In this document: piece by piece, positions 4,521-60,200 of the stretch
Layout: each line of letters starts with the position of its first letter
How positions within the stretch are numbered: the stretch's first letter is position 1
Assembly: GCF_028641065.1 (NCBI RefSeq)
Contig: NC_073412.1
Location: forward strand, 1,736,001 to 1,800,000
From: Leucoraja erinacea
Taxonomy: Eukaryota
DNA: 64,000 nucleotides
Reading direction: 5' to 3'
The notes under the pieces: generated by a model
What the model was told of the DNA's origin: nothing
The model's database searches: none
The model's input: only the letters and a program-made list of their open reading frames with translations
Program-made: the position numbers and the translations under genes

Positions 4521-6645
4521 CAGGAGTAGAGGCCATTCGGCCCTTTGAGCCTGCACCGCCATTCAATATGATCAAGGCTGATCATCCAACTCGGTATCCC
4601 ATCCCTGCCTTCTCTCCATACCCCCTGATCCCTTGAGCCACAAGGGCCACATCTAACTCCCTCTTAAATATAGCCAATGAACTGTGGCCTCAACTACCTT
4701 CTGTGGCAGAGAGTTCCAGAGATTCACCACTCCCTGTGTGAAATTTTTTTTTCTCATCTCGGTCCTAAAAGATTTCCCCCTTATCCTTAAGCTGTGTGAC
4801 CCCTTCTGAGACGGGATATTGACCCCAGAATCAGTCTAACATCTCACACCTTTGAAAGGAAGGATCTGACAGATAGACAAACCTTTGAGGTCCTTTGGCA
4901 GCTTGCAACCCCAGCCCTATGAATATCGATTTCTCTATAACTCCGTAACCCTCAGATAGACACTAAATGCAGGTCAAGGGGAGAACGCACAAACTCCGTG
5001 CAGACACTAGAATTTAGAAAATTGAGGGGGGATCTTAAAGAAACTTACAAAATTCTTAAGGGGTTGGACAGGCTAGATGCAGGAACATCATTCCCGATGT
5101 TGGGGAAGTCCAGAACAAGGGGTCACACAGTTTAAGGATCAAGGGGAAATCTTTTAGCACCGAGATGAGGAAAACATTTTTCACACAGAGAGTGGTGAAT
5201 CTGTGGAATTCTCTGCCACAGAAAGTAGTTGAGGCCACAGTTCATTGGCTATATTTAAGAGGGAGTTAGATGTGGCCCTTGTGGCTAAAGGGATCAGGGG
5301 GTATGGAGAGAAGGCAGGTACAGGATACTGAGTTGGATGATCAGCCATGATCATATTGAATGGCGGTGCAGGCTTGAAGGGCCGAATGGCCTACTCCTAA
5401 AGGATTTGAGTATAGGTTCTTGAAGGAAATAGGCAACGTTTCGGGTCGAAACCCGGAAGGGTTTCGTCCTGAAACGTTGCCTATTTCCTTCGCTCCATAG
5501 ATGTTGCTGCACCCGCTGAGTTTCTCCAGCACAGCCATAATCATATTGAATGGCGGTGCAGGCTCGAAGGGCCGAATGGCCTACTCCTGCACCTATTGTC
5601 TATGTTTCTAAGAGCTGAGTGGTAGCACTGGCAGATTTTTCCCCACGAACAGGGTCTATTTTAGTGTTACATTTCAGTGATTCTAATAAATGGGGCCACA
5701 GTTTTGGAGTCTCGTTGCTGCAGTGCTGGAAGTGTATTAGCCATCCAAGATCCTGCTCCCTATCGCCACCTAATGATTCTTGCTGGTACACAAAATTGCT
5801 GGAGAAACTCAGCGGGTGCAGCAGCATCTATGGAGCGAAGGAAATAGGCGACGTTTCGGGCCGAAACCCTTGCTGGAAGGTTTAGTTTAGTTTGGAGATA
5901 CAGCGCAGAAACAGGCCCTTCGGCCCAACGTGTCCGTGCCGACCAGCGACCCCCGCACACTAACACCATCCTACACACACTAAGGAAGAATTTACTATTT
6001 TAACTGAAGCCAATTAACCCACATCTTTGGAGTGTGGAAGGAAATCGGGGAACCTGGAGAAAACCCACGCGGTCCCAGGGAGAACGTGCAAACTCCGTAC
6101 AGACAGCACCTGAGGTCAGGATCAACCACGTGTGTCTGGTGCTGTGAGGCCCTGTGTTATATCCTTTATCAGATCCTTGATTCAGATTCAGATTCAATTT
6201 TAATTGTCATTGTCAGTGTACAGTACAGAGACAACGAAATGCCTTGAGATGAGGAGGTTTTTTTTTTTTTAGCGGTATAGATACACTTTTAAAGAATAGG
6301 CAGGAACGTTGATTCACGCCAATGATCTTGGTGAATGAGGAACAGCCTCAGAAGGCTGAGTGGTCTGTTTGAGCAAAATGCTCCCCGTATAATCCCATCA
6401 CTTTGGTTATGTTTCTCAAGATGTAGCACAGAACGCCATAGGAGATCCTTCTTCCCTGTGGCTATCAAGCTGTACAACTCCTCCCCACCCCACCCCCCTT
6501 CTAGCGTGGGGTAGACTGAGACTGACTCCTCTCCCCCCCTCCTCCCCAAACCTTTCCACTTATCACTTTAATTTAGTGTTTATAATGGTTGAACACAAAC
6601 TCAAACCCGATGCTAGGGTCGGGTGAGTGGGTGTAGGGAAGGAAG

Positions 6646-7248
6646 TGAAAAAGTTACTTTTATAACAACTAAACCAGGTTCGCTTCTTAATAAACAGACA
6701 CCACACAAACTGTTTGGTAGACCAGTTCAAAACTTTACTTAACATTGGCCGATGAAAGGGAGCGAGAATTCCAGCTAAGTGACCAATGTACACACTCGAC
6801 TGTCCTCGGTCCTCTTCTCTGAACAACAGAATTACATTGCCTTAAATAGGTTTTTTTTGTCCCCTTAGCACATTCCACAGACATTAGTCATGGTCAGAGG
6901 TACAGGAAAAGGTTTCCACAGAATGCATCACATCAAAGGCCTTTTGTTTAAATGGTACAAAATATACTAAAAACATTGGCCATTTGCTTTAGGTCATTTT
7001 ATCTCCACTTCCCTGGTTCTTCTTTGTCACTTGGCCATCTGCTTTATTGCCTCTTGCTTCAAAGATGTGACCAACTATGTCTCTCTTCCTCTATCACCTC
7101 CTCACTTGGGAGACAATGTTATGGTATTTATTATCCCACACACTGCAACCTGAGACAAGCCTAATTTGACACTAAATATAAACTGTAAGCTAGCCCCGAA
7201 ACCTATTTTAATTTTTTCTTATTTTTGTAACTTTATTTGGCTTCATCA
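6646..7248 (-). mobile_element. Solo LTR, same family, inverted (603 bp)
   Basis: Reverse-complement homolog of 3820-4520 with its own 4-bp TSD GAAG (6642-6645, 7249-7252). Confidence 0.85.
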
Positions 7249-7462
7249 GAAGGGCAGTGGGATAAATCTCCGCTTCTTTCACTTCTTCATTCGTTTTTCT
7301 CTTCTCTTTTTATAAAAAATAATAATTTAGTGTTTCATGTATCTCGTGTGTTTATGACTGTTGGCAGATCAATTTCCCTCCTGGGATAAATAAAGTTCTA
7401 TCGTATTGTATGTGGATTCCTTAACCCATGGTCACCAACTGCTTGTTTGTCCAATCCTGCAG

Positions 7463-7578
7463 ACACTTGGTCGATGTTGTTGTCGGGGTCGTGAAGGGCA
7501 GAGCATCGTCAGACAGGCAGATCTTCTAGACGATCTTCATTCTGCCTTCATCACCAACACTCCCCACCATCCTCAGCG
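7463..7578 (+). other. CD276: CD276 5' UTR part of the first coding exon
   Basis: Acceptor ttgtttgtccaatcctgcAG ends at 7462 and is contiguous with the signal-peptide CDS. It implies a further upstream non-coding exon, which was not identified. Confidence 0.55.
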
Positions 7579-7636
7579 ATGCCCTTCGCCATCTTCCCGC
7601 TGTGTTTACTGCCTCTACTGCTGGGACTTTGCAGAG
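7579..7636 (+). CDS. CD276: CD276/B7-H3 signal-peptide exon (MPFAIFPLCLLPLLLGLCR+G)
   Basis: ATG at 7579 with G at -3, 19 mostly hydrophobic codons, then a phase-1 donor G|GTAAGC at 7637. It joins in frame to the IgV exon to give ...LCR-G-ALDIQVP (human: ...FCLT-G-ALEVQVP). Not in the ORF track in this frame. Confidence 0.85.
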
Positions 7637-9789
7637 GTAAGCCGCAAACTTTGCATTGCATTCGCCTGCTCGCCCTCAAAGGCACAAGGCAGGCCCAGGC
7701 CCTTTGGCCCAACTCGTCCACACTGACCGATTGTTAAGGGCTTGGGCACTCTGGAGTTTAGAAGGATGAGAGGGGATCTCATTGAAACATATAAGATTGT
7801 TAAGGCTTGGACACTCTAGAGTTTAGAAGGATGAGAGGGGATCTCATTGCAACATATAAGATTGTTAAGGCTTGGACACGCTAGAGGCAGGAAACATGTT
7901 CCCGATGTTGGGGGAGTCCAGAACCAGGGGCCACACACAGTTTAAGAATAAGGGGTAAGCCATTTAGAACGGAAACACTTTTTCTCACAGAGAGTGGGTG
8001 AAGCTGTGGAATTCTCTGCCTCACAGAGGGCGGTGGAGGCCGGTTCTCTGGATGCTTTCAAGAGAGAGCTAGATAGGGGTCTTAAAAATAGCGGAGTCAG
8101 GGGATATGGGGAGAAGGCAGGAACGGGGTACTGATTGGGGATGATCAGCCATGATCACATTGAATGGTGGTGCTGGCTCAAAGGGCCGAATGGCCTACTC
8201 CTGCACCTATTGTCTATTGACCATAATGCCCTTGCAAGCTTTCCATAAGACAGAGGAACAGAATGAGGCCATTCAACCCATTGAGTCTACTACGCTATTA
8301 AATCATGGCTGATCTATTTTCCCACAGGACTCCATTCTCCTGCCTTCCCCCATAATCTTCCTAATCAAGTACCTATCAATCTCCGCTTGAAAATACCAAA
8401 TTTGACCTCCGCAGCCGTCTGTGGCAATGAATCCCACAGATTCACCACCCTCTGGCTTAAGAAATTCTTCCTCATCTCCTTTCTAAACCAAGTCTTACAA
8501 CTTTCCAAACGATCGATGGGTTAGCTAAATAAACTTTCCTGGGATTTCCTTGCTTCATGTATGAAAAGGTTGGTCATGACCAGGCTGGCTCGATCATGTT
8601 GGTTTGTTGTTTCCAGGTGAACTGAGAAAATGTGATAAAACTTTGTGTGCTATCCTTTCAAATCATGCTGTACATGAAATTAATCAAACCACACTGAGGT
8701 AGGGCATGAAGAAGGGTCTCGACCCGAAACGTCACCCATTCCTTCTCTCCAGAGATGCTGCTTGTCCCGCTGAGTTACTCCAGCATTTTGTGTCTGTCTT
8801 CAGTGTAAACCAGCATCTGCAGCGANNNNNNNNNNNNNNNNNNNNNNNNNNNNNNNNNNNNNNNNNNNNNNNNNNNNNNNNNNNNNNNNNNNNNNNNNNN
8901 NNNNNNNNNNNNNNNNNNNNNNNNNNNNNNNNNNNNNNNNNNNNNNNNNNNNNNNNNNNNNNNNNNNNNNNNNNNNNNNNNNNNNNNNNNNNNNNNNNNN
9001 NNNNNNNNNNNNNNNNNNNNNNNNNNNNNNNNNNNNNNNNNNNNNNNNNNNNNNNNNNNNNNNNNNNNNNNNNNNNNNNNNNNNNNNNNNNNNNNNNNNN
9101 NNNNNNNNNNNNNNNNNNNNNNNNNNNNNNNNNNNNNNNNNNNNNNNNNNNNNNNNNNNNNNNNNNNNNNNNNNNNNNNNNNNNNNNNNNNNNNNNNNNN
9201 NNNNNNNNNNNNNNNNNNNNNNNNNNNNNNNNNNNNNNNNNNNNNNNNNNNNNNNNNNNNNNNNNNNNNNNNNNNNNNNNNNNNNNNNCAGACAAACATA
9301 CAGACAACACACACACACACACACGAGCTAGAGTTCAGATTATAGTGTTACAGAACTATAGCTTTACAGTTACAGAGGAAGTGCAAGAAAAAAATGCAAG
9401 TACCACAGTATGGTAGGGTGGAAGATTGGGAAGACACCCTAGCTAATAGTGTAAGGAAATGGTCGAACTGTTGATCTACAAACTTGTTCTTGCATGGCAC
9501 AAACAACCAAANNNNNNNNNNNNNNNNNNNNNNNNNNNNNNNNNNNNNNNNNNNNNNNNNNNNNNNNNNNNNNNNNNNNNNNNNNNNNNNNNNNNNNNNN
9601 NNNNNNNNNNNNNNNNNNNNNNNNNNNNNNNNNNNNNNNNNNNNNNNNNNNNNNNNNNNNNNNNNNNNNNNNNNNNNNNNNNNNNNNNNNNNNNNNNNNN
9701 NNNNNNNNNNNNNNNNNNNNNNNNNNNNNNNNNNNNNNNNNNNNNNNNNNNNNNNNNNNNNNNNNNNNNNNNNNNNNNNNNACGCTGGC

Positions 9790-22547: not shown

Positions 22548-23044
22548 TTTAGAAACATAGAAAATAGGTGCAGGAGGAGGCCATTCGGCCCTTTGAGCCA
22601 GCACCGCCATTCATTGTGATCATGGCTGATCGTCCCCAATCAATAACCCGTGCCTGCCTTCTCCCCATATCCCTTGACTCCACTAGCCCCTAGAGCTCTA
22701 TCTAACCCTCTTAAACCCATCCAGTGATTTGGCCTCCACTGCCCTCTGTGGCAGGGAATTCCACAAATTCACAACTCTCTGGGTGAAAACGTTTTTTCTC
22801 ACCTCAGGCTTAAATGGCCTCCCCTTTATTCTAAGACTGTGTGGCCCCTGGTTCTGGACTCGCCCAACATTGGGAACATTTTTCCTGCATCTAGCTTGTC
22901 CAGTCCTTTAATAAATTTATATGTTTCTATAAGATTCTCCCCTCATCCTTCTAAACTCCAGTGAATACAAGCCTAGTCTTTTCAATCTTTCTTCATATGA
23001 CAGTCCCGCCATCCCAGGGGCCAATCTGGTGAACCTACGCTGCA
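22548..23044 (-). mobile_element. CR1 LINE fragment split by the P-like element (continues at 26850-26915)
   Basis: ...GAACCTACGCTGCA | ACGCTGCACTGCCTCAATCACAAGGATGTCC reconstitutes the continuous LINE sequence seen at 34681-34730. Confidence 0.85.
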
Positions 23045-23144
23045 CAAAGATCGTAGAGGGACAAGATAGACCACTCCTCGAAAAACGCGTAGTATGACGT
23101 GTGTGACCGTCGACGCCATATTGTTAAGCATTTATTGGGCTGTA

Positions 23145-23254
23145 ATGGCGTCCTCAGCTAAATCTTCATCTCACTGCTCCGCTATCAAGTATTCTAATCG
23201 TAAATCTAAACGACCCAACCTGTCATTCTTTAGGTTCCCCAATAAAAAAGAAAG
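23145..23254 (+). pseudogene. THAP-domain exon 1 of the transposase (MASSAKSSSHCSAIKYSNRKSKRPNLSFFRFPNKKER)
   Basis: THAP N-terminal pattern C-x4-C...SFFRFP...ER, with the second Cys read as Tyr (TAT). Ends at a phase-2 donor AG|GTGAGA. No downstream THAP or catalytic exon was found. Confidence 0.75.
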
Positions 23255-23624
23255 GTGAGAAAATATTTTTATTATTTTCAGTCGATATTCTGTCGTGAAA
23301 ATGGTATTTTCTGTTCTCCCATCAACGGCCATTGGGAAACATTAGTCGGTACATTAGAAAGTTCTTAGACTTATTTTTAATAGTTCTTTACTCACCACAA
23401 TAATAAAGACAATTTTAACACTTCTGTACGTTTTTGGTTTTGTTTTGTAAGGGATTAGTCTGCACAATATGGCCCGCGGACACATTAGGTCCAGTGACCA
23501 GGAGATTTTTCGAGTCCGAGAATGGGCGGCTGTTACCCATTATATTCCTCGAACATAGGGACATAGCAAACAACACTCACATACATACAAGACATCACAA
23601 GCCCGCCGTGAAGAAGGGTGCAAT

Positions 23625-23657
23625 CAAATATTATATAACTCTGCTCTATCATCTTTG
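23625..23657. mobile_element. 33-bp P-like fused-termini remnant (footprint)
   Basis: CAAATATTATATAACTCTGCTCTATCATCTTTG flanked by a perfect 8-bp direct repeat GGTGCAAT (23617-23624, 23658-23665). Confidence 0.7.
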
Positions 23658-23709
23658 GGTGCAATGGTGGGTCGGGGAGGTCGGCAGCAGTGGCGGCGAT
23701 GGTCGCAAT

Positions 23710-23745
23710 CAAATATACTAGTGGAGCTCTGCTCTATAATCTTTG
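23710..23745. mobile_element. 36-bp P-like fused-termini remnant (footprint)
   Basis: CAAATATACTAGTGGAG+CTCTGCTCTATAATCTTTG flanked by GTCGCAAT / GTCGTAAT (7 of 8 match). Confidence 0.7.
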
Positions 23746-23930
23746 GTCGTAATGGGACGGCTGCGCGTTATAATGTGCTNNNNNNNNNNNNNNNNNNNNN
23801 NNNNNNNNNNNNNNNNNNNNNNNNNNNNNNNNNNNNNNNNNNNNNNNNNNNNNNNNNNNNNNNNNNNNNNNNNNNNNNNNNNNNNNNNNNNNNNNNNNNN
23901 NNNNNNNNNNNNNNNNNNNNNNNNNNNNNN

Positions 23931-24245
23931 CCTGTCCCCTTCTCCCTCCCCCCTTCTCCCTGTCCCCCCCTTTTCCCTTCTCCCTCCCCCTTCTCCCTCT
24001 CCCCCTTGTCCCTGTCCCCCTTCTCCCTGTGTCCCCCCCCCCCTCCCCCCCCCCCTTCTCCCTCTCCCCCTTCTCCCTCTCCCCCCTCCCTCTTTCGATC
24101 TCTCTCTCTCTCCTCCCCTCCTCTCCTCTCTCGCTCTCCCTCTCTTCTCTCTCTCTTCTCTCTCTCTCTCTCTCTCTCCCTCCCCTCTTCGCGATCTCCT
24201 TCCCTTCCCTCTCTCCCACCCTTCCATCTCTCCCTCCCTTACCTC
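23931..24245. repeat. Polypyrimidine (CT-rich) tract
   Basis: Direct inspection. Confidence 0.9.
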
Positions 24246-24763
24246 TCCGTGAGAGTTGGCAGCTCTGCTATGCCTTGGGTCCAAAAGAGGATAGATAGAA
24301 AATACTTAATTGTCTTTGTAAGAAGATTTTAATAAGCTCTTCTACATTTAAGGTAAATTGACATATTAGAGGCAAAACACATTTTCAATATACAGGTCTC
24401 TCCACACAACTGAAAACAATTGCATTTAAGTGATATATCATCCATTGTTCAGGCAAGTAGCACTAGGTTACAATAAACTTCCTGCATATTCCAGGAATTC
24501 ATCTCATAAAAATGGGAGAGGCTTAAATGCATTGTAAAATCATAAATCCATGTTGACTTGGACTAATCCTTTTACTGCTATCCAAATGCCCCATTATTAC
24601 ATCTTTAATAATTGACTCCAGCATCTTTCACACCACCAAAGTCAGGCTAACTGGTCTGTAATTCCCCATTTTCTCTCTCGCTCCTTTCTTGAAAAGTGGG
24701 ATAGCATTAGCTATCCTCCAATCCACAGGAACTGATCGTAAATCTATTGATCGTTGGAAAATA

Positions 24764-25935
24764 ATAGAAACATAGAAATAGAAATTAGGTGCAGGAGTAG
24801 GCCATTCGTCCCTTCGAGCCTGCACCGCCATTCAATATGATCATGGCTGACCATCCAACTCAGTATCCCGTACCTGCCTTCTCTCCATACCCTCTGATCC
24901 CCTTAGCCACAAGGGCCACATCTAACTCCCTCTTAAATATAGCCAATGAACTGGCATCGACTACCCTCTGCGGCAGAGAGTTCCAGAGATTCACCACTCT
25001 CTGTGTGAAAAAGGTTCTTCTCATCTCGGTTTTAAAGGATTTCCCCCTTATCCTTAAGCTGTGACCCCTTGTCCTGGACTTCCCCAACATCGGGAGCAAT
25101 CTTCCTGCATCTAGTCTGTCCAACCCCTTAAGAATTTTGTAAGTTTCTATAAGATCCCCTCTCAATCTCCTAAATTCTAGAGAGTATAAACCAAGTGTAT
25201 CCAGTCTTTCTTCATAAGACAGTCCTGACATCCCAGGAATCAGTCTGGTGAACCTTCTCTGCACTCCCTCTATGGCAATAATGTCCTTCCTCAGATTTGG
25301 AGACCAAAACTGTACGCAATACTCCAGGTGTGGTCTCACCAAGACCCTGTACAACTGCAGTAGAAACTCCCTGCTCCTATACTCAAATCCTTTCGCTATG
25401 AAAGCTAACATACCATTCGCTTTCTTCACTGCCTGCTGCACCTGCATGCCTACTTTCAATGACTGGTGTACCATGACACCCAGGTCTCGCTGCATCTCCC
25501 CTTTTCCTAGTCGGCCGCCATTTAGATAATAGTCTGCTTTCCTGTTTTTGCCACCAAAATGGATAACCTCACATTTATCCACATTATACTGCATCTGCCA
25601 AACATTTGCCCACTCACCCAGCCTATCCAAGTCACCTTGCAGTCTCCTAGCATCCTCCTCACAGCTAACACTGTCCCCCAGCTTAGTGTCATCCGCAAAC
25701 TTGGAGATATTGCCTTCAATTCCCTCATCCAGATCATTAATATATATTGTAAATAGGTGGGGTCCCAGCACTGAGCCTTGCGGTACCCCACTAGTCACTG
25801 CCTGCCTAATGAAGAACTCAACCATATTATGGTCACTCTTGCCCAAGGGGGCAGTACAACAAGATTGCTAACTAACCCTTCCTCATTACTCAATACCCAG
25901 TCTAAAATAGCCTGCTCTCTCGTTGGTTCCTCTAC
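24764..25935 (-). mobile_element. HER1/CR1-clade LINE, internally deleted, nested in the P-like element
   Basis: 328-aa ORF 24860-25846 with SGVPQGSVLGP, FADDTK and LVRPHLEYCVQFWSP. An endonuclease-region piece (GKSDHNMVEF) is fused to the RT region; (CTATGTTT)-type tail. A further RT fragment lies at ~24590-24763. Confidence 0.92.
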
Positions 25936-25944
25936 ATGTTAATC

Positions 25945-26070
25945 ATATGTATAAATATATATGTATGTGTATATATATGCATGTATATGTATATGTGTGT
26001 ATATATGTATGTATATATATGTTTATATGTGTGTATGTATGCATATAAATGTATCCATATGTATGTGTGT
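25945..26070. repeat. (TA/TG)n microsatellite
   Basis: Direct inspection. Confidence 0.9.
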
Positions 26071-26447
26071 NNNNNNNNNNNNNNNNNNNNNNNNNNNNNN
26101 NNNNNNNNNNNNNNNNNNNNNNNNNNNNNNNNNNNNNNNNNNNNNNNNNNNNNNNNNNNNNNNNNNNNNNNNNNNNNNNNNNNNNNNNNNNNNNNNNNNN
26201 NNNNNNNNNNNNCCTTTATGGTTTATGTATATCATCTTACAAGACAAATAAATTAATAGTGATGATTTAAATCAAAGTAGCTTCTGATACATGAGAATAA
26301 ACTATTATCTCTAACTTGCCTCTCACACACAGACACACATTCATATAAATATATAAATATATATACGTTAAATTTAATTTTTTGCAGTTTTTGCAATACA
26401 ATGTGGGTGAGGGTCTGTTTACAAGCTTGAGGATCTTTGCTTTGGAT

Positions 26448-26475
26448 CAAAGATTATAGCGGAGGAAAATCTTTG
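26448..26475. mobile_element. 28-bp P-like fused-termini remnant (footprint)
   Basis: CAAAGATTATAGCGGAG+GAAAATCTTTG flanked by CTTTGGAT / CTTTGAAT (7 of 8 match). Confidence 0.6.
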
Positions 26476-27697
26476 CTTTGAATACAGCGGGTGGAATACC
26501 GGAAGTCGAGTGTCGGTAACAAATCTGACGTTCCCGCTACACGTCAGATGAACTTCGAGGATCTATCTTGCGATCTTTGACGGCACTGCCTCAATCAAAG
26601 GATGTCCTTCCCTCAAATTAGGCTGTACACAATACAATCTTTAAGAGCTCTCTAGCTCTCTCTTAATCCAGAGAATTTCCACTGCTTTGCCAGTGCTCAC
26701 ATCTGCAGCCTCCTCAGACAGCCTATCTTTCAAGAATGGTCACATAGGAAGTCGAGTGTCGCTGTAACAAATTGACGTTCCGTTGCGTACTACACGTCAG
26801 CCCATTGAATTTCGAAGGAGTGGTCTATCTTGTCCCTCTACGATCTTTGACGCTGCACTGCCTCAATCACAAGGATGTCCTTCCTCAAATTAGGAAACCA
26901 AAACTGTACACAATACAATCTTTAAGAGCTCTATCTAGCTCTCTCTTGAAAGCATCCAGAGAATTGGCCTCCACTGCCTTCTGAGGCAGAGAGTTCGTTG
27001 CAGCCAGTGCTGTGCTAGATAAATCTGCAGCCTCAGACAGCCTATCTTTCAAGTAATGGGCTCTGCCTTGGTCAACATAGAGTGTAAAATCTTTGTCTGC
27101 CGACTGCTATACCATACGGTGGAAGCACAGTGGCCCTGGTTATTGAAGCTGTGTTAGAGGATTAAGTGGGATCCAGTCCCACTTTCGGCTTTGCTATATC
27201 TTAGTAGAGATATAATTCTAAATTCTCTTAACTTGGCAAACCAGCACTAAACTGCGATTTATCAGAGTATTCTGCAAAAAGTGACAAACTTCACCTTTTC
27301 TCAATCCACTCCTGCTGTGTCGACCCAGAACCGACATCAGAGGTCAATAGACAAAGACTAAAAATAGGCTAGCCTGATCCGGTCAAAGCTGCCCGCAAGT
27401 CCTGACAGAAAATTGACGTATTTCACCTTTATCTTCCTTCACTCCAGTTATTTTTGCTGAAGTACTTTGTAGGGGAAGGCAACGCAGAGGCTGGAAATCT
27501 AAAAATAAAACGAGGGGAGGTNNNNNNNNNNNNNNNNNNNNNNNNNNNNNNNNNNNNNNNNNNNNNNNNNNNNNNNNNNNNNNNNNNNNNNNNNNNNNNN
27601 NNNNNNNNNNNNNNNNNNNNNNNNNNNNNNNNNNNNNNNNNNNNNNNNNNNNNNNNNNNNNNNNNNNNNNNNNNNNNNNNNNNNNNNNNNNNNNNNN

Positions 27698-35720: not shown

Positions 35721-37055
35721 TGTGATCATCAAAGGAACCATTGTCAGCTGAAGTACATTGGATAGATTGAGGGGTCTGAAGAAGGGTCTCGACCCCTGTC
35801 TCCTTTCGGTAAGGTTTAGAGGGAGATGGGCCAAATGCAGGCAGGTGGGACTAGTATAGATGGGACATCTTGATCGGCATGGGCAAGTTGGGCCGAAGGA
35901 CCTGTTTCCATGTTGTATGTCTCGAAAGTAAATGTACGATTCACTAAACTAAATGAGCATGCTGTCGTTGATAGAATATTTTTATTATGCAACTAGATTG
36001 AATATTTACCCAGGCTGAAGATGAATGAGTAGGGCCCAGCGTGCAGTCTCTGGCACGTGGACTATGTCATATGCTGAGAGAACGGAGGTGATACAGGATC
36101 AAAAATGGTGGGAGATTGCAACCTTCACGTGGTCCACCCTGTTTCAACGAATGCAATAAACCCGGCATGCACAATCAAATAGAACAAGTTGTTCTACAAC
36201 TTTAGGCTGTGCACGCCACACGCAAGAAGAAGAAGGAGCAAAAATAATATCTTCATAAAAATGTGGAGAATAGAGGATGTTTGCATGAGGCCAAGATCAT
36301 TGTATTCATTTACAGTATTGTGCAGGGCGGGCTGGATTGATGGGGAATTTGCCCAATTATCCCCATTTTGATGGGTTCTAGTAATGACACCAATCGGTGC
36401 CAGAAACTCCCACATTTCACCGATGAAGAACAGTAAAGCATGAACGGTTTAAGGAACATGCCAATTGTTTTTGTTTGTGATGAGCTTCACACAGCAGCCT
36501 AATGGAAGTCATTACTGCAGTTGACAGTGTTGGTTCTGCTGCATATCATCCGCTAATTCTCCCAGCTCCCGCACAACAGCTCATTGGAATAATTTCAATT
36601 GGTGCCTTTTTCTGGATGACACTGAATCTTATGCTGAAGGTCCCCACTCACTCGCTGCTCTCTTAATGTACCAGCTGGTTGACCTTATTCAACACTGCAA
36701 AACTAAGGGGACTTTGTTCTTCTTGTTCTACAAGGCGCAGTGTGTATGAAGAGAATCATTTATGAAGGGAATCTGTTTATTTAGTTTAGTAAGTAAGTAA
36801 GTTTATTGGCCAAGTATTCACATACAAGGAATTTGCCTTGGTGCTCCACCCACAATTGTATTGTATTGTATTGTATTCAAATTTATTGTCATTGTCTCAA
36901 TTTGAGACAACGAAATGAATTTCCCTTACAGGCAGTATCATTAAAAAATAAAAATAAAAATCATTCAACAAATAAAATAAAAAATTAAATAATAAATAAA
37001 TAATAAAACATATTAAAAATAAAATTGAAATTGAAATTGAGCAACAAGTAACAAC

Positions 37056-37620
37056 ATGACATACTGCGTACAGTTCTGGTCTCCTAATCTGAGGAAAGAC
37101 ATTCTTGCCATAGAGGGAGTACGGAGAAGGTTCACCAGACTGATTCCTGGGATGGCAGGACTTTCATATGAAGAAAGACTGGATAGACTCGGCTTGTACT
37201 CGCTAGAATTTAGAAGATTGAGGGGGGATCTTATAGAAACGTACAAAATTCTTAAGGGGTTGGACAGGCTAGATGCAGGAAGATTGTTCCGGATGTTGGG
37301 GAAGTCCAGAACAAGGGGTCACACAGTTTAAGGATAAGAGGGAAATCTTTTAGGACCGAGATGAGAAAAACATTTTTCACACAGAGAGTGGTGAATCTGT
37401 GGAATTCTCTGCCACAGAAGGTAGTTGAGGCCACACAGTTCATTGGCCATATTTAAGAGGGAGTTAGATGTGGCCCTTGTGGCTAAAGGGATCAGGGGGT
37501 ATAGAGAGAAGGCAGGGATGGGATACTGAGTTGGATGATCAGCCATGATCATATGGAATGGCGGTGCAGGCTCGAAGGGCCGAATGGCCTCTACTCCTGC
37601 ACCTATTGTCTATGTTTCTA
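37056..37620 (+). mobile_element. HER1/CR1 LINE 3' fragment (duplicate at ~56114-56670)
   Basis: YCVQFWSPNLRKDILAIEG... plus tail. Confidence 0.88.
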
Positions 37621-38060
37621 TACAGTGACTGTTACGAATTACTAGATATACAGAATAGAATATACAGACTAGATATACAGATAGAAATTCTAGATGTACA
37701 GCGCGGAAACAGGCCCTTCTGCCCAGTGGGTCTGCGTTGACCAGCGATCCCTGCACATCAACACTACCCTACACACACACACACACACACACACACACCG
37801 GGGACAATTTTTGTCAAACAGGTGCTGACTGAGTGGAGTTTGCACGTTCTCCCTGTGACTGTGTGGGTTTCCTCTGGGTACTCCGGTTTCCTTTCAAATC
37901 CCCAAAGGCGTGTGGGGTTTGTAAGTCCATTGACCTCTCTAAATTGCCTCTCGTGTGCAGGGAGTGGATTAAAAAATTGGGATAACATAGAACTAGTGTG
38001 AACGGGTGACCGATGGGCTTGGAGGACCAAAGAGCCCGTTTCCATGGTGTAGCTCTAAAC

Positions 38061-38191
38061 CAAAGATCTTTGGGCATAACAGAGATGGGGTTCTTATTCC
38101 TAAAATGGCGGAAGTGACGTTCCGTTGCGCTCCGATCCGTACTACACATCAGTCCATTGGAGCGATCTGCCTTGCTCCTCTAGAATCTTTC
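38061..38191. mobile_element. 131-bp MITE of the CAAAGAT family, copy 1
   Basis: CAAAGAT...AATCTTT(C) with TSD CTCTAAAC / CTTTAAAC. Shares ggaagt..gacgttccgttgcg..tactacac.tcag.ccatt with the right subterminal region of the 3.8 kb element. Confidence 0.75.
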
Positions 38192-38944
38192 CTTTAAACT
38201 ACACTACATTTAGTTTTGAATATAACTCAGTTTCTTTCGTGAGTTAGACCATTCAGGATAGTCTGCTTGGATTGGTAAAATTGCCCGAATTCTCTCCTAG
38301 AATATAAATCGGTTCAATTTGGGTCACGGTATCCAATCCTCATAATATTAATGACCTGTTCTAATGCTGAAACCTAATATTCTGTGATTGTGGCATAATA
38401 TTGGGTTATTAATGATTTATTTGTTTTTCGTTACTTATATGGTTTGTCAATGGTCTGTGAAACATTAAAATCTAAATGGAAGCAGCTGAAAAATCCCAAT
38501 AAAACCCACCAGAGCATTAACAACGCTTTCATAAACAAGAAAGCAGGGAAACATTAATGTTTCCCAAGAATGGGGTAAAACTATAACTCAAGCCGCTTAG
38601 ACTCCTTGCATCTCGTATGAATAAATTTTTACGAATTCGTAACATTTTTAATTACTTGTGTGTGTTCTGCGGTGGGAAGATTCTGCATGATCAGAATGCA
38701 TGAACTAATTGCACCAGATCTCTGATACAAACTAACTGAGATGCATCGCTGGTCTGTTCAAGACTGTTCATCACAGTGGAGGCCAAGTCAATGGGTATTC
38801 TTCGAGATATACTTGGAAATGAGGAGGAATTTCTTCAGCCAGAGGGTGGTGAATCTGTGGGTTTCAATGCCGCAGACAGCTGTGGGGTCCAAGTCATTGG
38901 GTATTTTTAAGGCGGAGATTGAATTATATTTTATTAGTAGGTAC

Positions 38945-39250
38945 ACAAAAAAGCTGGAGAAACTCAGCGGGTGCAGCAGCATCTATGGAGCGATGGAGAT
39001 AGGCAACGTTTCGGGCCGAAACCCTTCTGGAAATAGGCAACGTTTCGGGCCCGAAAACCTTCTGGAAATAGGCAACGTTTCAGGCCCGAAAACCTTCTGG
39101 AAATAGGCAACGTTTCGGCCCGAAACCCTTCGGGTTTCGACCCGAAACGTTGCCTATTTCCTTCACTCCATAGATGCTGCTGCACCCGCTGAGTTTCTCC
39201 AGCATTTTTGTGTACCTTTGATTTTCCAGCATCTGCAGTTCCTTCTTAAA
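38945..39250. repeat. Inverted Penelope-end pair with an internal ~35-bp tandem repeat (duplicate at ~57985-58280)
   Basis: (aggcaacgtttcgggcccgaaaaccttctggaaat)x3-4, then a fold-back. Confidence 0.8.
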
Positions 39251-39344
39251 CACTTAGATATTTTATTAGTGCGGGTGTCAGGGGTTATGGGGAGAAGGCA
39301 GGAGAATGGGGTTGAGAGGGAGAGATAGATCAGCCATGACTGAA

Positions 39345-39620
39345 TGGCAGATTTTAGACTTGGAGTCTGCGGCCCACTGAGTCTGCACTGACCACCGAAC
39401 TAGCTCTACGCCAGCACTATGGGACTATTTACAACTTTACAGGAGCCGATGAACCTGCACGTCATTGGAGTGTGGGGGAAACCGGAGCTCCCGGAGAAAA
39501 CCCACGCTGTTACGGGGAGAGCGTGCAAACTCTGTACAGACAGCGCCCGTGGTCAGGATCGAATACGGGTCACTGGCGCTGTGAGGCAGCAACTCTACCG
39601 CTGCACCACCGTGCTGCCCA
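39345..39620 (-). mobile_element. HE1-like V-SINE (duplicate at ~58390-58665)
   Basis: Reverse complement of the above. Further copies at about 5879-6150, 10558-11005, 12945-13180 and 45990-46167. Confidence 0.8.
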
Positions 39621-54506: not shown

Positions 54507-57098
54507 GGCACAGTTTAAGAATAAGGGGTCAGCCATTTAGAATGGAGACGAGGAAACACTTTTTCTCACAGAGAGTTGTGAGTCTGTGGAATTCTCTGCC
54601 TCAGAGGGCGGTGGAGGCTGGTTCTCTGGATACTTTCAAGAGAGAGCTAGATAGGGCTCTTAAAGATAGCGGAGTCGGGGGATATGGGGAGAAGGCAGGA
54701 ACGGGGTACTGATTGTGGATGATCAGCCACGATCACATTGAATGGCGGTGCTGGCTCGAAGGGCCGAATGGCCTGCACGTATTGTCTATGTGATCATCAA
54801 AGGAACCATCGTCAGCTGAAGTACATTGGATAGATTGAGGGGTCTGAAGAAGGGTCTCGACCCCTGTCTCCTTTCGGTAAGGTTTAGAGGGAGATGTGCC
54901 AAATGCAGGCAGGTGGGACTAGTATAGATGGGACATCTTGGGCAAGTTGGGCCGAAGGGCCTGTTTCCATGTTGTATGCCTCGAAAGTAAATTTACGATT
55001 CACTAAACTAAATGAGCATGCTGTTGTTGATAGAATATTTTTATTATGCAACTGGATTGAAGATTTACCCAGGCTGGAGATAAATGAGTAGGACCAGCGT
55101 GCAGTCTCTGGCACGCGGACTATGTCATATGCTGACAGAATGGAGGTGATACAGGAGCAAAAATGGTGGGAGATTGCAACCTTCACGTCGTCCACCCTGT
55201 TTCAACGAATGCAATCAACCTGGCATGCACAATCAAATAGAACAAGTTGTTCTACAACTTTAGGCTGTGCACGTCACATGCAAGAAGAAGAAGGAGCAAA
55301 AATAATATCTTCATAAAAATGTGGAGAATAGAGGATGTTTGCATGAGGCCAAGATCATTGTATTTATTTACAGTATTGTGCAGGGCGGGCTGGATTGATG
55401 GGGAATTTGCCCAATTATCTCCATTTTGATGGGTTCTAGTAATGACACCAATCGGTGCCAGAAACTCCCACATTTCACCGATGAAGAGCAGTAAAGCATG
55501 AACGGTTTAAGGAACATGCCAATTGTTTTTGTTTGTGATGAGCTTCACACAGCAGCCTAATGGAAGTCATTACTACAGTTGACAGTGTTGGTTCTGCTGC
55601 ATATCATCCGCTAATTCTCCCAGCTCCCGCACAACAGCTCATTGGAATAATTTCAATTGGTGCCTTTTTCTGGATGACACTGAATCTTATGCTGAAGGTC
55701 CCCACTCACTCGCTGCTCTCTTAATGTACCAGCTGGTTGACCTTATTCAACACTGCAAAACTAAGGGGACTTTGTTCTTCTTGTTCTACAAGGCGCAGTG
55801 TGTATGAAGAGAATCATTTATGAAGGGAATCTGTTTATTTAGTTTAGTAAGTAAGTAAGTTTATTGGCCAAGTATTCACATACAAGGAATTTGCCTTGGT
55901 GCTCCGCCCACAATTATATTGTATTGTATTGTATTCAAATTTATTGTCATTGTCTCAATTTGAGACAACGAAATGAATTTCCCTTACAGGCAGTATCATA
56001 AAAAAATAAAAATAAAAATCATTCAACAAATAAAATAAAAAATTAAATAATAAATAAATAATAAAACATATTAAAAATAAAATTGAAATTGAAATTGAGC
56101 AACAAGTAACAACATGACATACTGCGTACAGTTTTGGTCTCCTAATCTGAGGAAAGACATTCTTGCCATAGAGGGAGTACGGAGAAGGTTCACCAGACTG
56201 ATTCCTGGGATGGCAGGACTTTCATATGAAGAAAGACTGGATAGACTCGGCTTGTACTCGCTAGAATTCAGAAGATTGAGGGGGGATCTTATAGAAACTT
56301 ACAAAATTCTTAAGGGGTTGGACAGGCTAGATGCAGGAAGATTGTTCCCGATGTTGGGGAAGTCCAGAACAAGGGGTCACAGTTCAAGGATAAGAGGGAA
56401 GTCTTTTAGGACTGAGATGAGAAAATCATTTTTTACACAGAGTGTGGTGAATCTGTGGAATTCTCTGCCACAGAAGGTAGTTGAGGCCAGTTCATTGGCC
56501 ATATTTAAGAAGGAGTTAGATGTGGCCCTTGTGGCTAAAGGGATCAGGGGGTATGGAGAGAAGGCAGGTACAGGATACTGAGTTGGATGATCAGCCATGA
56601 TCATATCGAATGGCGGTGCAGGCTCGAAGGGCCGAATGGCCTCTACTCCTGCACCTATTGTCTATGTTTCTATACAGTGACAGTTGCGAATTACTAGATA
56701 TACAGAATAGAATATACAGACTAGATATACAGATAGAAATTCTAGATGTACAGCGCGGAAACATGCCCTTCTGCCCAGTGGGTCTGCGTTGACCAGCGAT
56801 CCCTGCACATCAACACTACCCTACACACACACACACTGGGGACAATTTTTGTCAAACAGGTGCTGACTGAGTGGAGTTTGCACGTTCTCCCTGTGACTGT
56901 GTGGGTTTCCTCTGGGTACTCCGGTTTCCTTTCAAATCCCCAAAGACGTGCGGGGTTTGTAAGTCCATTGACCTCTCTAAATTGCCTCTCGTGTGCAGGG
57001 AATGGATTAAAAAATTGGGATAACATAGAACTAGTGTGAACGGGTGACCGATGGGCTCGGAGGACCAAAGAGCCTGTTTCTATGGTGTAGCTCTAAAC

Positions 57099-57229
57099 CA
57101 AAGATCTTTGGGCATAACAGAGATGGGGTTCTTATTCCTAAAATGGCGGAAGTGACGTTCCGTTGCGCTCCGATCCGTACTACACATCAGTCCATTGGAG
57201 CGATCTGCCTTGCTCCTCTAGAATCTTTG
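57099..57229. mobile_element. 131-bp MITE of the CAAAGAT family, copy 2
   Basis: CAAAGAT...AATCTTTG with a perfect 8-bp TSD CTCTAAAC (57091-57098, 57230-57237), inserted in a SINE tail. Confidence 0.8.
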
Positions 57230-60200
57230 CTCTAAACTACACTAAATTTAGTTTTGAATATAACGCAGTTTCTTTCGTGAGTTAGACCATTCAGGGTAGT
57301 CTGCTTGGATTGGTAAAATTGCCCGAATTCTCTCCTAGAATATAAATCGGTTCAATTTGGGTCACGGTATCCAATCCTCATAATATTAATGACCTGTTCT
57401 AATGCTGAAACCTAATATTCTGTGATTGTGGCATAATATTGGGTTATTAATGATTTATTTGTTTTTCGTTACTTTTATGGTTTGTCAATGGTCTGTGAAA
57501 CATTAAAATCTAAATGGAAGCAGCTGAAAAATTCCAATAAAACCCACCAGAGCATTAACAACGCTTTCATAAACAAGAAAGCAGGGAAACATTAATGTTT
57601 CCCAAGAATGGGGTAAAACTATAACTCAAGCCGCTTAGACTCCTTGCATCTCGTATGAATAAATTTTTACGAATTCGTAACATTTTTAATTACTTGTGTG
57701 TGTGTGTTCTCTGGTGGGAAGATTCTGCATGATCAGAATGCATGAACTAATTGCAGCAGATCTCTGATACAAACTAACTGAGATGCATCTCTGGTCTGTT
57801 CAAGACTGTTGATCACAGTGGAGGTCAAGTCAATGGGTATTTTTCCGGATATACTTGGAAATGAGGAGGAATTTCTTCAGCCGGAGGGTGGTGAATCTGT
57901 GGGTTTCAATGCCGCAGACAGCTGTGGGGTCCAAGTCATTGGGTAGTTTTAAGGCGGAGATTGAATTATATTTTATTAGTAGGTACACAAAAAAGCTGGA
58001 GAAACTCAGCGGGTGCAGCAGCATCTATGGAGCGATGGAGATAGGCAACGTTTCGGGCCCGAAACCCTTCTGGAAATAGGCAACGTTTCGGGCCCGAAAA
58101 CCTTCTGGAAATAGGCAACGTTTCGGGCCCGAAAACCTTCTGGAAATAGGCAACGTTTCGGCCCGAAACCCTTCGGGTTTCGACCCGAAACGTTGCCTAT
58201 TTCCTTTGCTCCATAGATGCTGCTGCTGCACCCGCTGAGTTTCTCCAGCTTTTTTGTGTACCTTCGATTTTCCAGCATCTGCAGTTCCTTCTTAAACACG
58301 TAGATATTTTATTAGTGCGGGTGTCAGGGGTTATGGGGAGAAGGCAGGAGAATGGGGTTGAGAGGGAGAGATAGATCAGCCATGACTGAATGGCAGATTT
58401 TAGACAATAGTCTGCGGCCCACTGAGTCTGCACTGACCACCGAACTACCTCTACGCCAGCACGATGGGACTATTTACAACTTTACAGGAGCCGATGAACC
58501 TGCACGTCATTGGAGTGTGGGGGAAACCGGAGCTCCCGGAGAAAACCCACGCTGTCACGGGGAGAGCGTGCAAACTCTGTACAGACAGCGCCCGTGGTCA
58601 GGATCGAATACGGGTCTCTGGCGCTGTGAGGCAGCAACTCTATCGCTGCGCCACCGTGCCGACCACAGTCACCTCCAGAAATAGGTGAAAGAGTATATCA
58701 GCGATTGGGTGATAGCAGAGTTTACACATGGGACGGACTCACCTCTACAAGGTCAACATAGAAGGCGGCCTTCTCAATCAAACCCATTTCTCAAAATAAC
58801 CAGAATGGCAGATTATGTCGCCGTTTCTGTGGAGGAGAGTTATTTACTGCGTGCCCGTGCCGTTAAACGTTGATTTACAAGCCTTCAAATTTTTTGCCGT
58901 AACCATGGCAACGCAAGTTAATTATTGGAGTCACAAAGCAGAGACGGATTCTGTTCATTCCAGACATTTACAGGTTCAATATCTGCAGCGCTAATAAATG
59001 TTTTATCTGGTGTTTCAGATATGAATAATTTTGGTTCCCAGCCGTTGAAATTAATTTATTTCCCGTTCGATGAGCGATCGAATCATTTCTTGTCTTTAAT
59101 TTCATTTAATTAGTTTGTTCGCACGTTGACACGTTCTTAAAGGGGCAGTGATCCATCTAATGGCAATTCCACGCTGGGATCAGTGCTCCTCCTACACATA
59201 GTGTGTAAAACATCTCACGGTAGCGCAGCGGTAGAGTTGCTGCCTCACAGCGCCACGGACCTGGGTTAGATCCTGAACTCAGGTGCTGTCCCCACGGAAT
59301 TCATAAAGTCATAACTGATAGCCATAGATGAGGAGAAGAGGAGATGTAAGGACAGGTGTTGCATCTTCAGTGGTTGCAGCGAAATGCATTTCGTTGTCTA
59401 ATGCATTTCGTTGTCTCTGTACTGTACACTGACAATGACAATTAAATTGAATCTGAATCTGAATCTGATCTGCAGGCGAAGATTCTCTGTACAATCGGTC
59501 TCCATCCGTGGCCTTCTGCTGAATGTTTACCTTTTCCAATTGAGGAACATGACTGAACCTTTCATCGCCTTGCATTAGTTTTATAAAAAGCTTCATTGGT
59601 TTCTGTGTCCAGTTTTGGTCTCCTAATTTGAGGAAGGACATCCTTGTGATTGAGGCAGTGCAGCGTAGGTTCACCAGATTGATCCCTGGGATGGCGGGAC
59701 TGTCATATGAGGAAAGATTGAAAAGACTAGGCTTGTATTCACTGGAGTTTAGAAGGATGAGGGGGGATCTTATAGAAACATATAAAATTATAAAAGGACT
59801 GGACAAGCTAGATGCAGGAAAAATGTTCCCAATGTTGGGCGAGTCCAGAACCAAGGGGCACACACAGTCTTAGAATAAAGGGGAGGCAATTTAAGACTGA
59901 GGTGAGAAAAAACTTTTTCACCCAGAGAGTTGTGAATTTGTGGAATTCCCTGCCACAGAGGGCAGTGGAGGCCAAATCACTGGATGGATTTAAGAGAGAG
60001 TTAGATATATCTCTAGGGGCTAGTGGAGTCAAGGGATATGGGGAGGACGGGTTATTGATTGGGGACGATCAGCCATGATCACAATGAATGGCGGGGTTGG
60101 TTCAAAGGGCCGAATGGCCTCCTCCTGCAACTATGTTTCTATGTTTCTATGAATACTTTTATTCCGTTTTCTGTTGCCGTGGTGATTTGCTGCAAGGTTT

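Follow-up and report, generated by a model that had tools for sequence, protein, structure and literature searches.

The genome of the little skate, Leucoraja erinacea, contains very short units in which the left end of a transposon is joined to a right end and the whole is bracketed by an 8-bp direct repeat. Three such units, U1, U2 and U3, lie in the 64,000-nucleotide (nt) stretch analysed here (contig NC_073412.1, positions 1,736,001 to 1,800,000 of the forward strand; hereafter, the window), all of them inside a single 3.8-kb (3805-bp) non-autonomous P-like element at 23045–26849 (+), which we refer to as the host element. From the anatomy of these units and of their relatives across the genome, we conclude that they are very probably donor-site repair scars of a P-superfamily cut-and-paste transposon. 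The initial annotation of the window had described the three units as germline excision scars produced by P-type cleavage in a vertebrate and had favoured P over hAT; the target-site duplications (TSDs), the variety of the junctions and the sharp ceiling on the length of the retained arms support that description.

The observation of three units is confirmed, with the positions and flanking repeats first reported for them. U1 is a 33-nt unit at 23625–23657 (+; span 23617–23665) between copies of the TSD GGTGCAAT at 23617–23624 and 23658–23665, which agree at 8/8 positions. The 36-nt unit U2, at 23710–23745 (+; span 23702–23753), is flanked by GTCGCAAT and GTCGTAAT (7/8), and the 28-nt unit U3, at 26448–26475 (+; span 26440–26483), by CTTTGGAT and CTTTGAAT (7/8). 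A search of the 64-kb window under relaxed rules (at most one mismatch per 7-nt terminus, a length of 12–60 nt and a TSD match of at least 7/8) recovered exactly U1, U2 and U3, and 100 first-order Markov simulations of the window produced none. Assembly gaps at 23780–23930 and 26071–26212 are clear of all units and their TSDs, the right TSD of U2 stopping at 23753 and the left TSD of U3 beginning at 26440. The ungapped paralogous copy at locus L005 is collinear with the window on either side of both gaps, and this collinearity gives no sign of a misjoin at either one. By contrast, the arm lengths initially assigned to the units (14+19, 17+19 and 17+11 nt) had to be replaced. U1 is composed of a left arm of ~11 nt, ~4 nt of filler and a right arm of ~18 nt. 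In U2, an 18-nt left arm and a 20-nt right arm, both full, share a 2-nt GC overlap. U3 derives by mutation to 28 nt from an ancestral 31-nt scar (18+15−2) that remains intact in the copies at L005, L010 and L018. Of the CAAATAT starts, that of U2 occurs only in the window copy and that of U1 in 4/4 aligned copies.

Units of this kind were counted throughout the 2.19-Gb assembly, with the reversed pattern as the control. The pattern CAAAKAT-N10-30-ATMTTTG gave 9957 matches versus 2216 for the reversed control, and a pattern with strict ends and 9-nt flanks gave 4108/4065 matches versus 705/711; the genome-wide search that the initial annotation had called for thus places the units far above the reversed control. 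We estimate that the genome holds about 6,000–8,000 of them, with an average density near 3.5 per Mb. Sixty listed places were taken with their flanks and, together with the window, yielded 81 units; collapsing sites with the same TSD reduced these to 38 independent units, which come from the first 29 Mb of a single chromosome. The flanking 8-mers matched at 8/8 in 38 of the 81 sampled units and at 7/8 in another 14, and therefore at 7/8 or better in 52. When the right flank was shifted by 8 nt as a control, 0 units matched at 6/8 or better, and the agreement of the flanks is thus far better than chance. The TSDs of the independent units prefer the palindromic sequence GTNNNNAC (G at position 1 in 58%, T at position 2 in 68%, A at position 7 in 71% and C at position 8 in 58%), and this target preference shows that the duplications were made by a transposase. 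The GT....AC motif that it contains is found in the targets of both the P element (GTCCGGAC) and hobo (GTNCGNAC) (PMC3276498), and it was therefore dropped as a means of discriminating between P and hAT.

The length of transposon end retained in the units has a sharp upper limit. Longer elements that begin with the 7 nt found in the units have termini that fall into a 20-nt class, CAAAGATC[CT]TATAGC[GA]GAGC/AAGATAG, and an 18-nt class, CAAAGATNNTAGAGG[AG][AG]C/AAGATAG, in which the slash marks the boundary before AAGATAG. Each arm of the 38 independent units was aligned to the parent termini from the sampled loci, giving 76 arms. The modal arm length, represented by 21 of the 76, stops exactly at the GAGC/AAGATAG boundary, and a second peak lies 5 nt before it, at an internal GC. 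Two arms were scored past the boundary, and both are accounted for by the opposite arm. Genome-wide, units with full 20-nt arms gave 528+519 strand matches (1047) and units with full 18-nt arms gave 497+508 (1005), with a control of zero in each case; among the 100 matches listed for each of these full-arm searches, none needed retention beyond the boundary. A mode near 17+17 nt had been named at the outset as support for the excision model. The ceiling is instead 18 or 20 nt, depending on the terminus class, and there is no single 17+17 mode; the histogram of unit lengths has peaks at 24–28, 33–34 and 38 nt that are set by microhomology.

The junctions between the arms are heterogeneous in a regular way. 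The commonest products have two full arms joined on the terminal self-complementary GC, which gives lengths of 38 nt and 34 nt, and blunt joining of two full arms gives 40 nt and 36 nt. Other joins use the internal motif TATAGC (28, 31 and 33 nt) or GATC (the 12-nt unit CAAAGATCTTTG). The mode of the junction overlap is 2 nt, GC, in 14 of the 38 independent units. Templated insertions, in the form of short direct duplications of the neighbouring arm, are present at the junctions of units at L008, L036, L049, L055 and C1:27111770. Three of the features expected of an excision footprint were therefore found: copies of an 8-bp TSD kept on both sides, terminal arms up to a fixed length, and, at the junctions, microhomology or templated sequence typical of alternative end joining.

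A P-type excision footprint is of a kind already known from Drosophila experiments. The cuts made by P transposase in Drosophila fall at the end of the element on the 3′ strand and 17 nt inside it on the 5′ strand, which produces 17-nt non-complementary 3′ tails (PMC7776569, PMC10983969, PMC2895639); a stagger of 17 nt is peculiar to P transposase (PMC7776569). In the repair junctions recovered in the P{wa} assay, the two copies of the 8-bp TSD enclose at most 17 nt of CATGATGAAATAACATA and at most 17 nt from the opposite end, which meet at a microhomology or a templated insertion (PMC2895639). The skate units share with these junctions their layout, the 8-bp TSDs, the GT....AC motif and the joining of tails on a short self-complementary microhomology. 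They differ in the ceiling, which is 17 nt in Drosophila and 18 or 20 nt in the skate, and in the termini, which begin CATGATG... in the Drosophila P element and are unrelated to the CAAAGAT... of the skate. Moreover, whereas the Drosophila junctions were recovered by assay, the skate scars are fixed in the germline in their thousands, many of them amplified as passengers of repeats.

These observations suggest the following sequence of events. A P-superfamily transposon would insert into the genome and generate an 8-bp TSD. Its transposase would later excise it, cutting the flank-attached strand within the element at a point 18 or 20 nt from the terminus, immediately ahead of AAGATAG, and each flank would keep a 3′ single-stranded tail made of the first 18–20 nt of the element. 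End joining would then fuse the two tails. Most commonly, the self-complementary terminal GC of the tails would anneal to give the 34-nt and 38-nt near-palindromes; in a second kind of junction, the tails would join on the internal microhomology TATAGC or GATC, and in a third, short templated insertions would be introduced. The product would read TSD, at most 18/20 nt of the left end, at most 18/20 nt of the right end, TSD. Judged from such products, the long and sharply bounded arms argue for P-type chemistry, and we infer cleavage with an 18–20-nt stagger in the skate family. In hAT excision, it is the flank that forms the hairpin and no transposon ends stay behind; Tc1/mariner excision leaves 2–3 nt, and piggyBac excises precisely.

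U1, U2 and U3 would have formed in this way within the ancestor of the 3.8-kb element and would then have been copied to hundreds of loci by its amplification. Copies of the host element at L005, L010 and L018, which are 86–95% identical to the window, bear all three units with their positions and flanking sequence conserved, although a small deletion in L005 covers the left TSD copy of U1 (the right copy is present). U2 with matching flanks also occurs at C1:2847590, 5908899, 9501001 and 26400437, and U2 has the same offset in the copy at C1:26399783, which does not differ from the window copy over its first 218 bp. Because paralogous copies share U1–U3, the scars arose in the ancestor of the element and not at this locus, which bears out the earlier suggestion that they were inherited from a master copy.

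An empty pre-insertion state was found for a fourth scar, U0. At 23594–23601 (+), the window has a single ATCACAAG, the empty site, whereas most paralogous copies have ATCACAAG-CAAAG-ATCACAAG, a 13-bp scar. Across 315 copies, the site has just two states, 0 or 13 extra nt; it is empty in 19 of the 100 first-listed copies (~19%) and scarred in the other ~81% (about 80%). The state of U0 splits the host-element family into two subfamilies, and the window copy belongs to the empty one. This empty and scarred paralogous pair shows that the TSD and the remnant come together. For U3, no copy with an empty site was found in the genome at three or fewer mismatches. A possible further degenerate scar lies at 26422–26439 (+), where it ends in GGATCTTTG (CAAGATACTCGAGGATCTTTG in other copies) and abuts the left TSD of U3. 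A recognizable TSD is absent for this sequence; if it is a scar, it may mean repeated insertion at one 8-bp target.

A different explanation is that the units are themselves mobile, as micro-MITEs (miniature inverted-repeat transposable elements), that is, minimal 24–40-bp elements with two terminal inverted repeats (TIRs), each inserting with its own TSD. The 8-bp TSDs around the units do show the target preference of the family, and the 34-mers and 38-mers made of two full arms recur at many sites with different TSDs. However, the junctions are heterogeneous nested truncations and not one sequence with point mutations, and they differ from one independent site to another. The most recurrent variant, a 40-mer with characteristic substitutions that is present on many chromosomes, has the same right flank, TG[TC]GTGACGAC, in 94 of 94 copies; this single flank means that the 40-mer was multiplied along with a host repeat, as its passenger. 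The recurrent units with the TSDs or flanks AGCTGCAC, CTGCACAG and CTACTGAC are passengers too, as are U1–U3. The 18/20-nt ceiling on the arms has no reason in such a model, and, given a stagger of 18–20 nt, a unit of 40 bp or less would have almost no duplex core to excise, so that such units should be dead ends. We therefore regard mobile micro-MITEs as an unlikely source of the units. A fixed-length micro-MITE had been named beforehand as a finding that would overturn the excision reading, and it was not borne out, the commonest variant being a host-repeat passenger and the junctions differing between sites.

It is also improbable, and slightly more so, that U1 and U2 are one scar duplicated locally together with ~85 bp of flank, in which case the window would hold two scars. 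In favour of such a duplication, and to that extent against our account of three separate scars, their TSDs GGTGCAAT and GTCGCAAT agree at 6/8 positions, and their right arms differ at one base. Yet the left arms differ (~11 nt plus filler in U1, the full 18 nt in U2), there is no convincing similarity of the flanks past the TSDs, and related right arms are to be expected from donors of one subfamily.

If the units are excision scars, the identity of the elements that left them can be approached from their arms. The 34-mers that combine a TTA-type left arm with a CC-type right arm mirror full elements with the same ends (L010 and the terminus pairs), and the donors thus appear, from these sequence matches, to include older relatives of the host element and not only a sister family. 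The initial annotation had attributed the scars to a sister family; the donors also include the older subfamily of the large element itself. The genome contains ~40 P-transposase genes, with open frames of up to 773 amino acids, which carry HTH (helix-turn-helix), RNase H-N, GTP-binding insertion and RNase H-C domains (PF21787, PF21788, PF21789 and PF12017). Nearly identical 773-amino-acid open P-transposase frames occur on several unplaced contigs (L063–L068).

Two observations point to a connection between the family and a P transposase. First, a P-transposase RNase H match at C1:34500071–34500472 (−) lies 3.3 kb inside an inward-facing terminus of the 18-nt class at C1:34496784 and 5.7 kb downstream, on the same strand, of a 5′ marker of the family at C1:34506194. 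The interval of ~10 kb at C1:34,496,784–34,506,800 is suggestive as a candidate transposase-bearing family member, and a chance origin of this positional link at C1:34.50 Mb is unlikely; family terminus pairs 4.5–7.2 kb apart are also present on C1. Second, the host element retains at 23145–23255 (+) the relic of a first exon, which codes for half of a THAP zinc finger, the N-terminal one (…HCSAIKYSN…SFFRFP…), and ends in a GT splice donor. The second zinc-binding Cys of this exon has been changed to Tyr, and its closest similarity is to the P-transposase homologue P0083, whose THAP start matches 15 of 27 residues of its peptide. Only two copies of the exon retaining the second THAP cysteine were found genome-wide, neither of which adjoins a transposase match. 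These sequence features are in favour of a P affinity of the host element over a hAT one. Two other candidate connections were rejected: an ATCTTTG near a transposase open reading frame (ORF), considered as a terminus, lies within the ORF, and a CT-rich similarity between the host element and transposase loci is of low complexity and not meaningful homology. In the outside homologues P0002, P0001 and P0004, no termini were present in the contigs, where DNA was obtained.

Least probable of all is that the elements are of hAT type and that the units arose by another process, such as hairpin or slippage deletion in small palindromic hAT MITEs: the 8-bp TSD, the CAAAG termini that fit the YARNG rule and a GT....AC target motif typical of hobo too (PMC3276498) all agree with a hAT origin, and none of the sequenced copies with these termini is autonomous, but the TSD and the YARNG termini are common to P-like elements and do not discriminate, the units keep up to 18–20 nt of each end where a footprint with no ends would be expected, slippage in a TIR palindrome of ~40 bp should give arms of up to 40 nt and none passes 18/20 nt, the relic first exon is THAP-like and not BED-like, and the gene inside the family-bounded interval is that of a P transposase. 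The likeness to the hAT elements hobo, Ac and Hermes extends to the resemblance of the hobo motif GTNCGNAC to the skate GTNNNNAC, and the difference lies in the footprints and the exon. No hAT-type transposase linked to the skate family was found.

In addition to the agreement of the termini and target motif with hAT elements, several observations weigh against the interpretation of the units as P-type excision scars. The arm statistics come from a small sample, the 38 independent units of the first 29 Mb of one chromosome, and the arm ceiling could mark a terminus-protecting protein instead of the position of a cut. None of the sites that are scarred elsewhere was seen with a full element in place, so excision is deduced from its products rather than observed. 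With regard to the source of the activity, the 3.4-kb loci around the intact P-transposase ORFs (L061–L068) contain no family terminus or THAP exon, and the 37-amino-acid peptide of exon 1 has no Pfam match even at E = 10. The connection at C1:34.50 Mb is one of position only, and the genes that might mobilize CAAAGAT-ended elements are candidates.

No feature of P transposase is more unusual than its 17-nt staggered cut, for which biochemical proof is confined to the Drosophila enzyme. Among vertebrate P-superfamily elements, zebrafish Pdre2 and THAP9 (PMC10983969) resemble the skate family in their 8-bp TSDs, short TIRs and mostly non-autonomous copies. Excision assays of the zebrafish system gave larger flanking deletions (PMC10983969), whereas in the skate the stagger is reported by the scars themselves; the skate also differs in having copies identical over 218 bp and intact 773-amino-acid frames, which suggest recent activity. 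In the literature searched, we found no report of a cut position for a vertebrate P-like element, be it zebrafish Pdre2/THAP9 or human THAP9 (PMC10983969, PMC7776569), and, Repbase and Dfam aside, no report of a fixed genome-wide footprint record in a vertebrate. We think it fairly likely that the little skate has a recently or currently active P-superfamily system, that its scars are the first natural record, on a genome-wide scale, of P-type cleavage in a vertebrate (an 18–20-nt stagger before AAGATAG) and that they show how the germline of a cartilaginous fish mends long 3′ tails that are not complementary, with microhomology and templated insertions in a manner resembling the polymerase-theta signature. 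The skate would then be a candidate active vertebrate P-like system, and the scar arms provide a concrete prediction of the cut position, 18 or 20 nt in, for an in vitro cleavage or excision assay. The several thousand scars, only some share of which are independent, could be used to study end-joining signatures in an early-branching vertebrate. For annotation, palindrome-like units of 12–46 bp are best read as scars and not as a MITE family.

The scars are also clustered. The ancestor of the host element had acquired 3–4 scars in 3.8 kb, compared with the genome average of ~3.5 per Mb, a frequency far above chance, and at the sampled loci a second validated unit within ~2 kb is ~8 times more frequent than expected from the genome density. 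Clusters occur at L059:2010–2108, L012:2010–2299, L006:2010–2888, L036 and L015, with up to three scars within 100 bp, and several scars lie inside other family members (L011:1159–2202 and L054:1821–2412). This clustering suggests local hopping or self-targeted insertion. The 300-bp element at L014:2010–2309, which lies between perfect copies of the TSD CACAGAAC, starts with a complete 38-nt scar-like palindrome and has a normal right terminus; its layout is left arm, right arm, ~240 bp and right end.

The host element itself has TIRs of ~40 bp that begin CAAAGATCGTAGAGGGAC/AAGATAG, which places it in the 18-nt terminus class, and it is flanked by a perfect 8-bp TSD, ACGCTGCA, at 23037–23044 and 26850–26857. 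Its first 218 bp (23045–23262) have at least 812 candidate copies in the genome, at least 35 of which, among the matches listed, are at 100% identity. The element contains low-complexity DNA and a nested LINE (long interspersed nuclear element) reverse-transcriptase fragment with a 328-amino-acid ORF at 24860–25846 (−). The copy at L005 aligns across this fragment at 95% identity; because L005 also has it, the LINE fragment is part of the amplified master copy and not a later insertion.

Elsewhere in the window, a perfect TSD, CTCTAAAC, flanks a 131-bp derivative at 57099–57229 (+) that belongs to the same superfamily and has undergone a one-sided deletion: 7–8 nt remain of its left end, against ~123 nt of its right end. 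A duplicate at 38061–38191, in which one end has mutated to ATCTTTC, is part of a 2.5-kb segmental duplication with 96.7% identity (36943–39455 versus 56000–58500). One-sided derivatives of 131–153 bp (57099–57229; L021:1658–1810) look like the outcome of abortive gap repair followed by end joining. They are reminiscent of the Stowaway-like MITEs derived from Tc1/mariner (PMC3814204), which are born by microhomology-mediated internal deletion; the skate units of 12–46 bp differ from such MITEs in that they give no sign of self-amplification.

Finally, the host element holds an older, diverged right end that terminates at 26579. The ~165 bp beyond this point resemble the DNA just outside the present right end (26490–26745 versus 26746–27060; 77% identity with many gaps), and the element in L005 terminates where the window equivalent is 26579. 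From this arrangement, the young subfamily seems to have captured former flanking DNA and acquired a second right end.

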